IMG/VR virus record: IMGVR_UViG_3300027708_000012
Span: 248,001-312,000 of that record
Direction: 5' to 3' (one strand)
Length of the DNA: 64,000 nucleotides
Shown: piece by piece, positions 25,786 to 35,665 of the stretch
How positions within the stretch are numbered: position 1 is the first letter of the stretch
How the letters are laid out: each line of letters opens with the position of its first letter
Notes under the pieces: generated by a model
What the model was told of the DNA's origin: nothing
The model's input: the letters and a program-made list of their open reading frames with translations, nothing else
Database searches by the model: none
Translations under genes and position numbers: made by a program

Positions 25786-25877
25786 TGGTACCCCCGGCGG
25801 GAATCGAACCCACATTAACCAATTATCTGTTGCATACGGGATATAAATCCGCTGTTTTACCATTAAACTACAGGGGC
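25786..25877 (-). tRNA. tRNA-Ile(TAT) with 22-nt variable region
   Basis: Acceptor GCCCCTG/CGGGGGT, loop TTTATAT, A31:C39 mismatch, CCA. Confidence 0.75.
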
Positions 25878-26820: not shown

Positions 26821-26896
26821 TGGCTCCCCAGCGTGGGATCGAACCACGGACACCTTGATTAACAGTCAAGTGCAACTACCGCTGTGCTACTGGGGA
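26821..26896 (-). tRNA. tRNA-Asn(GTT)
   Basis: Cloverleaf, loop CTGTTAA, G73, CCA. Confidence 0.95.
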
Positions 26897-27556
26897 ATAA
26901 AATTTGTTCTTTTTACTTATGACTAGGCGACTTGGCCAGTCTACAGTTTTGTTATATAAATTCATTGTTGTTGAGTTTATACTTACAATACTAAGATACG
27001 GATCTATTGATGACACAATGTCTTCAACAGATAATTGATGTGGTATGATACTTAAATTTAAAGCAGACAATTTTAATAATGTGTCAGTTGACATACTTTT
27101 AAAGTCTCTTCCTGAAATGCTTAACCAAATACCGTTAGGTCTAAGCACTCTAGATACAGATTTAGCAAATGCATGTCTTAGAGAACTATCTAAATCGTAT
27201 GTATGAAAACAGCCTCGATCTACTACGTAGTCAAAACTATTTTCTTCAAAACTATTTTTTAAAATATCAGTTGCTTGCAATTTAATTTTTGCATTTTCTT
27301 TTTTAGAAAGAGCAGAAATAATTGCTACATCAGATATATCTATTGCTGTTACATCTAATCCTCTTTGTTGTAACCAAACAGCATTTACAGGATCAGCGCC
27401 GCAACCTAATTCAAGTACAGTACCGCTAACTATATTTTGTTTAGAAAACCAATCTACAATATTGTGATCTACATCACCTTCCCAAGGATGGCTGGATGCA
27501 TTTGCAAAAATGCTATTCCATTTTTCTGTATTTTCTAAATTATTGTAGTTTGTCAT
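26876..27556 (-). CDS. class I SAM-dependent methyltransferase (TPMT/TehB-like)
   Basis: VLELGCG, IDIS, FDYVVDRGCFH, LRPNG. Confidence 0.85.
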   Translation of the reverse strand: MTNYNNLENTEKWNSIFANASSHPWEGDVDHNIVDWFSKQNIVSGTVLELGCGADPVNAVWLQQRGLDVTAIDISDVAIISALSKKENAKIKLQATDILKNSFEENSFDYVVDRGCFHTYDLDSSLRHAFAKSVSRVLRPNGIWLSISGRDFKSMSTDTLLKLSALNLSIIPHQLSVEDIVSSIDPYLSIVSINSTTMNLYNKTVDWPSRLVISKKNKFYSPVAQR

Positions 27557-27651: not shown

Positions 27652-27737
27652 TGGTGGAGTATCCTGGGATCGAACCAGGCGTGCCATTACGACGGCGGAT
27701 TTACAGTCCACTGCATCACCATTGATGCTTCTACTCC
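27652..27737 (-). tRNA. tRNA-Tyr(GTA)
   Basis: Long variable arm, loop CTGTAAA, CCA. Confidence 0.9.
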
Positions 27738-27774: not shown

Positions 27775-27796
27775 GCACTATTTCAGGTAGTGTTGG

Positions 27797-27964
27797 AAAG
27801 TGTGTATTAAAGCACTCTACATGGATGAACCCACTTGCCCTAAGGCCTGAGAATGCTTTAATACGCTACGATTTTTCGCTCCAGAAGAGGAGTTTCATCC
27901 CGTAGGCCGCCCATTCGCCCATGTTTTAAGTGCAGGCTAGGATCTCGTTTCCTATACACACTTT
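27797..27964 (-). ncRNA. ~168-nt multi-stem RNA
   Basis: Outer stem AAAGUGUGUA/UACACACUUU; inner GCGUAUUAAAGCAUUCU/AGAGUGCUUUAAUACAC; further hairpins. Confidence 0.55.
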
Positions 27965-27970
27965 GCGATA

Positions 27971-28123
27971 CTAACGACTCTCTACCAGAGTCTCTCGCTT
28001 TTTTAAAGCATTCATGTATTCAATTGCACGTTTCATCTTTTCTTGTATCAACTTTTGTTGATCTTCCTTAGATAAGGTATACAATTTCATCCACTCTGCT
28101 TGTTTTTCTTGTTTCTCTTTCAT
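27971..28123 (-). CDS. small charged helical protein (50 aa, MKEKQEKQAEWM...)
   Basis: Hand-translated ORF with CAGGAGA RBS right after the attenuator terminator. Confidence 0.65.
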   Translation of the reverse strand: MKEKQEKQAEWMKLYTLSKEDQQKLIQEKMKRAIEYMNALKKRETLVESR

Positions 28124-28135
28124 GTTTCTCCTGCG

Positions 28136-28172
28136 AAAAACAAAAAACCCCAGGGTTTTTAATCCTAGGGTC
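28136..28172 (-). terminator. attenuator terminator hairpin
   Basis: ACCCUAGG-loop-CCUGGGGU followed by UUUUUGUUUUU. Confidence 0.75.
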
Positions 28173-28199
28173 CTTGAAGTTTGCGGTGTATGTTTTACT

Positions 28200-28346
28200 T
28201 TACACTACGTCCTCCCGGACCCTTGAAATCTCTGGTGTACGATCATATGATAAACTTCCGCTATTAATCGCTGACCAAGAACAGGCTATAACGCCTGCCT
28301 GTTTGGGCATCGTATTAAACAGCTGATGTCTAAAATTTGATTGCAT
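28200..28346 (-). CDS. putative leader peptide (48 aa, MQSNFRHQLF...RVREDVV*)
   Basis: ORF between a sigma70 promoter and the terminator; its 3' end carries the anti-terminator arm AGGGUCC. Confidence 0.6.
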   Translation of the reverse strand: MQSNFRHQLFNTMPKQAGVIACSWSAINSGSLSYDRTPEISRVREDVV

Positions 28347-28401
28347 TTTGTTTCTCGTTTATCTCTTTAAAATTTGCTAGCTCTATTGCTAACTAGTCTC
28401 T

Positions 28402-28534
28402 ATTGTAGCACCTGCTACGTCTGTTGTCAAACAGTTTTGGTAAAATACTTTGTTGTATTTTTACAACGATATTTTATTTATCCTTTTATGTTAACAACAG
28501 TGTTTATTATACATTTATTTAGTCTCTGTGTCAA
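28402..28534 (-). promoter_or_regulatory. tandem sigma70 promoters driving the leader
   Basis: TTGACA-17-TACAAT (28402-28430) and TTGACA-17-TATAAT (28506-28534), both with TGn. Confidence 0.8.
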
Positions 28535-29723
28535 GCAGATAATTATTTTCTTTAAGAAATTCTTGTGCTTGTTTCCAAACTTTGTTATCTTCATCTAAAA
28601 AACCTCTGCCAGTATAACATCGATACCGTCTTTCTAAATTTATCTTAGAATCTGCTTCTGTTTTTCTAAATGCACCAGTTCGATTTAATATTTTATTTTT
28701 AATATCATCTCTAGTGCTATTATGCATGATTGTTTGATGTCTGTCACTCCCTATGGCACAAACGCTGTAATCTGTCCATTGTACTCTATGTTTATAATTT
28801 AATTTTGTTGCTTGTAGACTCACTCTAATAAATCCGGGTATGTAATAGTTATTACATGTATAGCCCAATGGAGTTGTAAAAGTTTCCCATTTTTTTGATT
28901 TTGATGCTAGTAATCCATGTACTCTATTGTATGTATCTATGTCGCCCTCGGTATAGCATAGATCAATATCATTGGGGTTCCAAGAAACTTTTCCGTATTC
29001 TAGTGCTATAAGATATGTTAGCGATCCACCGATCATATAGAATCCTTTTTCAAAGTCTGTTTGAAGGAATTCATGAATGAATTTTACTTGTTCTTTGATT
29101 GTTATCGGATATTCAGGTTCTTGAATCTTATTTTGCTCAAATCCCCATTTTCGTTCGTTGCAACCATTGCACTCGTTACATCGACCCATTTCTAATCTAG
29201 AACAACTATGAGTTATTGGAAACAAATCCCGGCGATGTGTTTGCACACATAAATTTATTATATGTCCTTTATTTAAATTTTGTAATGGAGTTTTAAAATG
29301 TTCGTTTTCTTTTGAAGGAATAGGTTGCCAGTTAACCATATGTTGAGGAAGCTGTTCGATTACTCCACAATATACAACATCAAACCCTAAGGTGTGTGCT
29401 TCCTTAACTGCTGACTTTACTTGTTCGTCTTCTGGCAAAGTGTTGTCGCCTACAATGGTAACAGGAGTTTGGGGCAAGTTGTGAATTTCATGTATTTTAT
29501 CAACTACACCTTGCGCAAAATACTTAGATCCTTCTTTTCGCATGACAGTTAAAGGTGTAATAGTGTGTAGTTCGTTAGTAAATCTATTTTCTAAATGTAT
29601 CAAATAATATAATAACGCACTATCTATGCCACCACTAACTAATACTGCTATTTTACTAGGTGAGTCTGGAAGTGTTAGATTAAAAATTCTTCTATCGTTT
29701 AATGATCCGCATGTAATATTCAT
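28515..29723 (-). CDS. QueC-like PP-loop ATPase fused to a nucleotidyltransferase-like domain
   Basis: SGGIDS and SC-x6-CNECNGC; C-terminal IGGS...NDIDL motif. Confidence 0.6.
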   Translation of the reverse strand: MNITCGSLNDRRIFNLTLPDSPSKIAVLVSGGIDSALLYYLIHLENRFTNELHTITPLTVMRKEGSKYFAQGVVDKIHEIHNLPQTPVTIVGDNTLPEDEQVKSAVKEAHTLGFDVVYCGVIEQLPQHMVNWQPIPSKENEHFKTPLQNLNKGHIINLCVQTHRRDLFPITHSCSRLEMGRCNECNGCNERKWGFEQNKIQEPEYPITIKEQVKFIHEFLQTDFEKGFYMIGGSLTYLIALEYGKVSWNPNDIDLCYTEGDIDTYNRVHGLLASKSKKWETFTTPLGYTCNNYYIPGFIRVSLQATKLNYKHRVQWTDYSVCAIGSDRHQTIMHNSTRDDIKNKILNRTGAFRKTEADSKINLERRYRCYTGRGFLDEDNKVWKQAQEFLKENNYLLDTETK

Positions 29724-29800: not shown

Positions 29801-30364
29801 TTAAAATGAACGTGTATAAAACACGTTGTAACCATCTTGACGTGAATCACCTGTGATCTTGTCGAAACGGAAACCAACTGCATTTTGTTTGTTGATTGCG
29901 TATGAAACACCAAGACGAAGTGTATCAGTTGTGTCGTTGTTTACATTAGGATTGCTAACAGACGTACGGAAACGATATCCTACTTGTGCTGTAAGACCAG
30001 TGTTACCAATTGGAGCTTTAACTCCTGGCTCTACTGAATAATATGCAAACTGACCGTTTGTGCTGTACTTGTTACCAACAGCAACTTTAGTGTAACCAAG
30101 AACTGGGCCATACAACGGAACAGTTGCAGTACCACCAACTTCTAATCGTGTACTAACTGCATTTGTAGTATCAGTTTGTGTAGACGATAGTTGTGTATGA
30201 ACACTGAATGTGCTGTTGATTGACTCACTTAATGTAAAATTAGTATTCATTTGATCTTTACCACCGTTTTTAGTGTCTAATTGAGCACCTTCGATTGTAA
30301 CTGATCCAGCAAATACCATTCCACTAATTGCCAAAGCAACCAAACCTGTTAAAATTTTCTTCAT
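29801..30364 (-). CDS. outer-membrane beta-barrel / porin-like protein
   Basis: Signal peptide, amphipathic strands, C-terminal YTRSF. Confidence 0.7.
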   Translation of the reverse strand: MKKILTGLVALAISGMVFAGSVTIEGAQLDTKNGGKDQMNTNFTLSESINSTFSVHTQLSSTQTDTTNAVSTRLEVGGTATVPLYGPVLGYTKVAVGNKYSTNGQFAYYSVEPGVKAPIGNTGLTAQVGYRFRTSVSNPNVNNDTTDTLRLGVSYAINKQNAVGFRFDKITGDSRQDGYNVFYTRSF

Positions 30365-35019: not shown

Positions 35020-35048
35020 ATTATACACTCAATATTTAAACAAGTCAA
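35020..35048 (-). promoter_or_regulatory. sigma70 promoter for the helicase-methylase operon
   Basis: TTGACT-17-TATAAT. Confidence 0.7.
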
Positions 35049-35055
35049 CCATAAA

Positions 35056-35078
35056 GAAACCCGCCGAAGCGGGTTCTA
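35056..35078 (-). terminator. intrinsic terminator after tmRNA
   Basis: AACCCGC-UUCG-GCGGGUU followed by a U-rich tail. Confidence 0.8.
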
Positions 35079-35079
35079 C

Positions 35080-35455
35080 TATTTTTGGTGACAAAGCATA
35101 GTTGCTTCGCGAGGGCAGTTTTTTAGGCTGCTAATGCAAATTCTGCATCATTGGCAGAAGCCAATGTTACTGGAACTTGAAAATACTCGAATGTAGATGT
35201 TTTAGCATTTACTTTAATTTGCTTGATTTACAGTCATCGCCTACTGAGTTGCCGTCTTCAATATCTAACCCCGTCGAAACCATGGCAGGCCCATCATAAA
35301 CACACTCAAATCTGAAAGGTGTCGCCTGTGACGCCTTGTGTTTATAACACCACCACTCGGGACTCAAACCCGCATGTGTTTATGGTGGACCTGGCGGGAG
35401 TCGAACCCGCGTCCGAGATTCCTTCTATCCAAAGGAATTACAACTATTTCATTTA
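35080..35455 (-). ncRNA. ssrA: circularly permuted two-piece tmRNA
   Basis: Acceptor piece ending GGUUCGACUCCCGCCAGGUCCACCA (35383), hairpin spacer, coding piece starting GGGCCUG (35292) with G3:U70; tag frame 35123-35206 ends ANDAEFALAA*. Confidence 0.9.
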
Positions 35456-35461
35456 ACCCAA

Positions 35462-35665
35462 TTACTTGGGTTGAATATTTGCTGCCTGCAAGCCTTTTTG
35501 ACCTTGTACCACATCAAATGTCACTGATTGATTCTCTTGCAGAACTTTGAATCCTGATGTTTGAATCGCTGAGTAGTGTGCGAAAAGATCCTCGCCGCCG
35601 CCGTCTGGAGTAATAAACCCAAAACCTTTGGTTTCATTAAACCATTTTACTTTACCTGTTGCCAT
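35462..35665 (-). CDS. cspA: cold-shock protein
   Basis: [21 protein letters not shown]. Confidence 0.95.

Follow-up and report, generated by a model that had tools for sequence, protein, structure and literature searches.

An upstream reading frame containing all 20 amino acids and ending in an RNA switch at the head of jumbo-phage tRNA arrays: a candidate leader-peptide attenuator

The window analysed here is a stretch of 64,000 nucleotides within a 345-kb uncultured viral contig (IMG/VR record IMGVR_UViG_3300027708_000012), and it carries a tRNA region on its minus strand. ARAGORN identifies 28 tRNAs between 13025 and 27644 and a tmRNA at 35032-35475, whereas Rfam adds a weaker tRNA at 27737-27655. 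All features described in the following are on the minus strand. At the head of the tRNA region lie two near-consensus sigma-70 promoters, an upstream one at 28534-28506 (TTGACA-17-TATAAT, 12/12) and a proximal one at 28430-28402 (TTGACA-17-TACAAT with an extended TG, 11/12), the latter having an expected start near 28395 and being conserved in L003, one of the relatives introduced below. They are followed by a small 5'-UTR hairpin at 28393-28376 (GUUAGC/GCUAGC), whose stem is kept and whose loop is changed in L003, and by a purine-rich ribosome-binding stretch (GAGA, 28356-28353) located 7-10 nt before the ATG. The leader ORF itself occupies 28346-28200 and comprises 48 codons plus TAA. It contains all 20 amino acids and 38 distinct codons, including GTT, GTC, GTA and GTG as well as AGA, AGG, CGG and ATA. 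The first ~36 codons form a long rod hairpin (28345-28238), the base of which includes U and G of the start codon.

The end of the ORF runs into a three-tier hairpin (28223-28167) composed of helix P1, in which AGGGUCC (28223-28217) pairs with GGACCCU (28173-28167), helix P2, in which GAGG (28214-28211) pairs with CUUC (28179-28176), and helix P3, in which GUGUA (28205-28201) pairs with UACAC (28190-28186). The stop codon (28202-28200) lies in P3. An intrinsic terminator (28175-28136) overlaps this structure: its core stem is formed by CCCUAGG (28170-28164) and CCUGGGG (28154-28148), closes a 9-nt loop, can extend to 12 bp (AAGGACCCUAGG / CCUGGGGUUUUU), and is followed by the U tract UUUUUUGUUUUU (28147-28136). 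The 3' arm of P1 and the 5' arm of the terminator share four bases, so that the two structures exclude each other, and the putative anti-terminator is the more stable of the two (-22.2 against -15.3 kcal/mol). Further downstream lie a small ORF of 50 aa (28123-27971) with an AGGAG ribosome-binding site at 28132-28128, which is the first gene reached by read-through, a candidate structured non-coding RNA (27970-27775) transcribed only by read-through, an internal promoter (27774-27746, 11/12), and the first tRNAs of the array, namely a tRNA-Tyr(GTA)-like gene at 27737-27655 and tRNA-Asp at 27644-27570. Additional near-consensus promoters are found within the array at 22592-22564, 21755-21727, 20214-20186, 19417-19389 and 16039-16011. 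Every element listed by the first-pass annotation, which had proposed an all-amino-acid attenuator and had cautioned that internal promoters also feed the array, is thus present.

Taken alone, this sequence is only moderately unusual. Windows of 48 residues drawn from the phage's own proteins hold all 20 amino acids in 2.25% of cases, with a mean of 16.5 types, and an independent-draw model gives 3.0%. None of 2830 own-gene windows of 48 codons reaches 38 distinct codons (mean 27.7 +/- 3.5), whereas 33.0 +/- 2.1 are expected given the peptide sequence (P = 0.014). The 276-nt leader folds far better than shuffled sequences (z = -5.8). One sequence alone would be only suggestive.

Megablast and blastn searches of the region against 50,697 cultured phage records found nothing, and tblastn of the leader peptide and of the small ORF gave only chance-level hits or none. 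The neighbouring QueC-like gene hits only Ralstonia phage RsoM2USA, at 30% identity, and the 40 kb around that hit show no annotated tRNA array. Exact-pattern scans of uncultured viral contigs, in contrast, were productive: although the 14-mer AGGGTCCGGGAGGA proved too unspecific and returned mostly unrelated contigs, a 19-mer inside the ORF gave 41 loci, and further copies were recovered with other patterns, including an ORF-side pattern that places no condition on the terminator. After removal of duplicates and chance hits, 137 distinct elements were obtained, many of them on contigs of 100-380 kb. A scan of bacterial genomes gave a single hit, on a 6-kb contig binned with a Polynucleobacter MAG, which fits the beta-proteobacterial type of the phage's tmRNA; the element is not a bacterial chromosomal feature. 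In Xanthomonas phage Xoo-sp13, another jumbo phage, ORFs of 35-70 codons with 20 amino-acid types occur at the chance rate (4 of 178) and none is followed by a switch; we have no evidence that the device extends beyond this family.

The complete amino-acid composition is kept in most of the family. Of 109 leaders recovered from the terminator side (42-51 codons), 97 contain all 20 amino acids, 10 have 19 and 2 have 18; in the extended set of 137 (42-53 codons) the corresponding counts are 118, 17 and 2. Controls from the same DNA behave differently: the neighbouring small ORF has all 20 types in 2 of 75 cases (mean 15.8 types), the other five reading frames of the leader DNA reach 20 types in 0-4 of 109, and nucleotide-shuffled leaders without stops do so in 4.5%. 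Simple inheritance does not account for this pattern, because 12 of 18 clusters below 50% peptide identity have 20 types, 5 have 19 and 1 has 18, while the 14 clusters below 40% identity are divided into 7, 6 and 1, respectively. Cys averages 1.12 copies and is single-copy in 91 of 109 leaders; as the only copy it occupies 20 different alignment columns, yet it is absent in only 2.8%, against 33% expected from its mean. His, Tyr and Trp are never absent, against 29-34% expected. Consistently, a comparison between the window and L003 shows that Cys, Tyr and His each disappear from one position and reappear at another. The set is usually complete before the switch begins, since the roughly 40 codons 5' of the A arm, the conserved RNA arm that lies inside the ORF 14-18 nt before the stop, hold all 20 types in 89 of 109, and the last 9-10 residues are dispensable for it. 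Codon diversity also exceeds what the peptides require (family mean z of +1.9, with 97% of members above zero), although part of this comes from the G+C-rich RNA arms.

Coding and RNA constraints appear to act together on the leader. In 25 ungapped close variants third codon positions vary the most and pN/pS is 0.42, and a GAG or AGGA-type motif lies upstream of the start codon (searched at -20 to -4; purine-rich around -11 to -7) in 96 of 109 variants. The tail of the ORF is read in two different frames (55 versus 53 variants) over the same conserved RNA arm, so that the tail peptide is free while the RNA is fixed. Even so, the ORF always ends 14-18 nt after the A arm, with the stop in the 5' strand, junction or loop of P3 in 101 of 109. 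P1 is present in the minimum-energy fold of all 109 variants, and the inner part (P2 and P3) folds with a mean z of -3.5 and uses 45 distinct apical helices. On average the anti-terminator is more stable than the terminator (-24.0 versus -16.9 kcal/mol), and the two overlap by 3-5 nt in all 137 variants. On a 79-sequence alignment, 98.2% of P1 cells are paired, with G-C 37, A-U 31 and G-U 9 at its outer pair, and 99.1% of terminator cells are paired, four pairs carrying changes on both sides; no shuffle out of 500 reaches either value, and slid registers collapse. The terminator stem measures 7-12 bp, and its U tract of 5-6 is followed by more U. The nucleotide shared by both helices covaries with both of its partners, as should be the case if two alternative pairings are under selection. 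Variants found from the ORF side show compensated arm changes such as GGGUUCC/GGAACCC, GGGUUCUUA/UAAGAACCC and CCCUGGA/UCCAGGG. The relatives thus show the opposite of a pattern in which homologs keep the peptide but not the pairing. Because a family-wide alignment of the ORF body was too gappy for a consensus fold, the rod hairpin was examined by per-sequence folding, which gave a mean z of -3.0 over 109 variants with every variant below zero, and in the 25 close variants, which share 28 consensus pairs, 3 of them with double changes.

Of 83 loci extending at least 1 kb downstream, 81 have a same-strand tRNA within 1 kb, and no tRNA lies on the opposite strand. The arrays hold 11-41 tRNAs covering 17-20 amino acids in the visible part, and tRNA-Tyr is the first tRNA in 33 related loci. 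At least one promoter scoring 11/12 or better lies within 250 nt upstream of the leader ATG in 100 of 104 loci, and two or more in 75, whereas such a promoter is found in the gap between the terminator and the first tRNA in only 25 of 97. In most members, therefore, the first tRNAs appear to be reached only through the switch. The window belongs to the minority with an internal promoter directly before the first tRNA, and together with the promoters inside the array this implies that an attenuator could control only part of the tRNA output here. A homologous ORF of 48-60 aa starts 16-20 nt after the terminator in 79 of 109 variants and matches no known family, and the candidate non-coding RNA is present in 78 of 109 loci, with several covarying helices and no match in Rfam.

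How might such an element work? On the basis of sequence comparison, and in the absence of expression data, we favour with reasonable confidence a ribosome-mediated transcription attenuator of the trp/ilv type that samples all 20 amino acids, as the first-pass annotation had proposed. We envision that a first ribosome keeping pace with RNA polymerase is on the A arm or at the stop, melting P1-P3, when the 3' arm of the terminator emerges, so that the terminator forms and transcription stops. If instead the ribosome is delayed at any codon of the 40-codon sensor segment, or never starts, the more stable anti-terminator would fold first and polymerase would read through into the small ORF, the conserved RNA and the tRNA array. 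The unit would then raise the output of the phage's near-complete tRNA set when decoding capacity for any amino acid falls, and shut it down again when translation is fast. Translation of the leader, the function of the terminator and the direction of this response are inferred, as is the idea, raised in the first-pass annotation, that host tRNA-cleaving defences provide the trigger. One may speculate that the rod hairpin acts like the trp 1:2 pause hairpin, synchronising the first ribosome with polymerase and closing the start site to later ribosomes. Some observations fit less well. In most members the only Glu codon before the switch lies 2-3 codons from the A arm, and a ribosome stalled there might favour termination rather than read-through. 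The start codon is partly buried in the rod hairpin and the ribosome-binding site is modest, so initiation may be inefficient. Of the 137 leaders, 19 lack one or two amino acids; whether these belong to arrays lacking the matching tRNA could not be decided from the incomplete data, but in two cases the visible array still has it, which contradicts the idea. Moreover, leader codons are no better matched to the phage's own tRNAs than ordinary phage codons (81% versus 83% readable, 40% versus 51% exact), so that a pure feedback on phage tRNAs is not specifically supported and the element looks rather like a sampler of the whole pool. Finally, the first products of read-through are a small protein and an RNA of unknown function, which could be the real targets.

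Alternatively, the same geometry might respond to any global slowing or failure of translation, such as an initiation block, ribosome shortage or inhibitors, with the complete composition serving another purpose or being only loosely relevant. The geometry alone makes read-through the default whenever no ribosome arrives, and the partly sequestered start codon, the position of the Glu codon and the lack of correspondence between leader codons and phage tRNAs are all compatible with this view. We nevertheless consider it unlikely, because a global sensor needs no particular composition, yet the presence of every amino acid is maintained by relocation of single-copy residues across 137 variants, and codon diversity exceeds expectation given the peptide. 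It is about equally unlikely that the ~260-nt terminated transcript, comprising the rod hairpin, the three-tier hairpin and the terminator, is itself the functional product, acting in trans or as a processing or stability element for the tRNA precursor. The strong fold of the leader and of the rod across the family, the partial constraint on synonymous sites (pS only 0.28) and the combination of strong promoters with a terminator, which would make such an RNA abundant, speak in its favour; however, an RNA-only function does not explain why the ORF stays open through frame-shifting indels with a fixed stop position, why the complete composition appears in one frame only, or why third positions vary the most. 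An RNA function could still coexist with attenuation, as attenuator-derived small RNAs do in other bacteria.

An ordinary small-protein gene with its own terminator seems more doubtful still. Motifs such as DRTPE and a conserved Trp recur in many variants and purifying selection is moderate, but the peptides diverge below 40% identity, their tail is read in two frames, no protein family matches, the stable hairpin competes with the terminator instead of adding to it, and a composition of exactly one of each rare residue is not a normal protein property. A chance ORF next to a terminator, conceivable for a single sequence given the 2-3% null rate, is rejected by the 137 variants that keep the property against controls at 0-4.5%.

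The closest known systems are the leader-peptide attenuators of enterobacterial amino-acid operons (trpL, hisL, leuL, thrL, pheL), with which the element shares a short leader ORF, a U-tailed terminator and an anti-terminator sharing bases with the terminator's 5' arm, and in which the position of the leading ribosome decides between the two structures and stalling gives read-through. Those leaders carry runs of one amino acid's codons, whereas this one has no run of any codon and contains, in most members, all 20 amino acids, the rare ones mostly once. They also have a 1:2 protector hairpin that enforces termination without translation; here the upstream rod hairpin does not include the A arm, and read-through would be the default without translation. 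The genes apparently controlled are tRNAs, a small ORF and an RNA in a phage rather than biosynthetic enzymes. The ilvGMEDA and ilvBN leaders likewise integrate the supply of several amino acids, but sense three related ones (Leu, Val and Ile), each present in multiple copies, whereas most residues occur here in one to three copies. The pheM leader of pheST also regulates a component of the decoding apparatus, but is specific to Phe and controls a synthetase rather than tRNA genes. In translation-stress attenuators found by Term-seq in Firmicutes, such as bmrB-bmrCD, the vmlR leader and the Listeria lmo0919 leader, slowing of a ribosome on a short leader ORF opens a terminator in response to general translation inhibition; these appear to respond to antibiotics and to control resistance genes. 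T-box riboswitches also read the state of the tRNA pool, but bind one uncharged tRNA directly, need no translation and occur mainly in Gram-positive bacteria, and Rfam found no T-box here. The element matches no Rfam, Pfam, PHROGs or NCBIfam model, and full-text literature searches, which do not cover most subscription journals, found no description of an all-amino-acid leader or of attenuation upstream of phage tRNA arrays.

It is tempting, though more tentative, to propose that jumbo phages of freshwater Betaproteobacteria carry a 20-valent homeostat of decoding capacity, in which a leader peptide selected to contain each amino acid about once races RNA polymerase to an RNA switch. Shortage of any single charged tRNA, which could come from host tRNA decay, anticodon-nuclease defence or codon mismatch, would then turn on the phage's private tRNA set together with the conserved small protein and the previously undescribed structured RNA, and restored translation would turn everything off again. 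As far as we could find, this would be the first case of tRNA genes governed by leader-peptide attenuation, and the first natural leader under selection for complete amino-acid coverage. The compositional rule, each amino acid at least once in about 40 codons, is a new kind of selective constraint on a coding sequence and could serve as a search signature for similar sensors elsewhere. How phages regulate their tRNA arrays, and why some carry a complete set, is largely unknown. A leader that samples all 20 amino acids would extend a textbook mechanism from one amino acid to all of them, and would be a simple natural readout of overall decoding capacity that links tRNA supply directly to tRNA gene expression, which would fit the current view that phage tRNAs replace host tRNAs lost during infection or cut by defence nucleases.

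Read-through of the attenuator would first reach a Lys/Glu-rich ORF (window 27971-28123, minus strand), which has a good ribosome-binding site. In 79 of 109 related loci, an ORF of this kind, encoding 48-60 aa, starts 16-20 nt after the terminator and shares a motif of the type TLS.E.F.KLI..K..RA..Y. It matches nothing in Pfam, PHROGs, NCBIfam, PDB sequences or cultured phages. Between the attenuator (or the small ORF) and the tRNA array lies a conserved structured non-coding RNA candidate, located at window 27775-27970 on the minus strand and at about 3030-3230 in L003, a locus from a related phage. This element is present in 78 of 109 related loci; several of its helices covary, and it contains near-invariant single-stranded blocks such as GGAAACGAG, GGGCGGCC and a closing AGUGUG/CACAC. 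Rfam 15 gives no match even at E <= 5. Because the candidate lies upstream of the internal promoter, only read-through would transcribe it.

A natural deletion variant is found in the viral contig locus L275. Here, the A arm is fused almost directly to the 3' arm of the terminator, so that the anti-terminator and the normal stop are lost and the ORF runs on. This locus may be a ready-made 'switch-less' control.

The tRNA array itself contains a tRNA-Tyr(GTA)-like gene with a long variable arm (window 27655-27737, minus strand), which is detected by Rfam (33.4 bits) but missed by ARAGORN in the window, whereas ARAGORN calls the equivalent gene as the first tRNA in 33 related loci. With this gene included, the array covers all 20 amino acids. 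Further along, tRNA-Ile(TAT) is 92 nt long both in the window (25786-25877, minus strand) and in L003 (5771-5862), which is unusually long for an Ile tRNA. The array is interrupted by ORFs, including a methyltransferase at 26876-27556, and it is punctuated on the minus strand by perfect or near-perfect sigma-70 promoters at 22592-22564, 21755-21727, 20214-20186, 19417-19389, 16039-16011 and 12897-12869.

The gene just upstream of the attenuator promoters (window 28515-29723, minus strand) has a QueC-like (queuosine biosynthesis) part. It is 402 aa long here, but its relative in L003 is about 206 aa, and only residues 1-203 match in L002, another related locus, and in L003. The window's copy therefore carries an extra C-terminal half. 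A 187-aa protein with a signal-peptide-like N-terminus, encoded at window 29801-30364 (minus strand) and at L003 1052-1612, is highly conserved between the two phages and is repetitive in a way suggestive of a beta-barrel. It has its own 11/12 promoter (30433-30404) and a terminator-like hairpin.

The phage also encodes a tmRNA of the permuted (two-piece), beta-proteobacterial type with a predicted tag ending in ALAA (window 35032-35497, minus strand), which lies about 7 kb upstream of the attenuator on the same strand. tmRNAs are also seen upstream of the leader in three related loci (L046, which is the window's own contig, L147 and L148). The only hit to the attenuator element in 185,579 bacterial and archaeal genomes is a short contig (JBBAKF010000113.1, 6.2 kb) binned into a Polynucleobacter MAG; this contig is probably a phage fragment and hints at the host genus.
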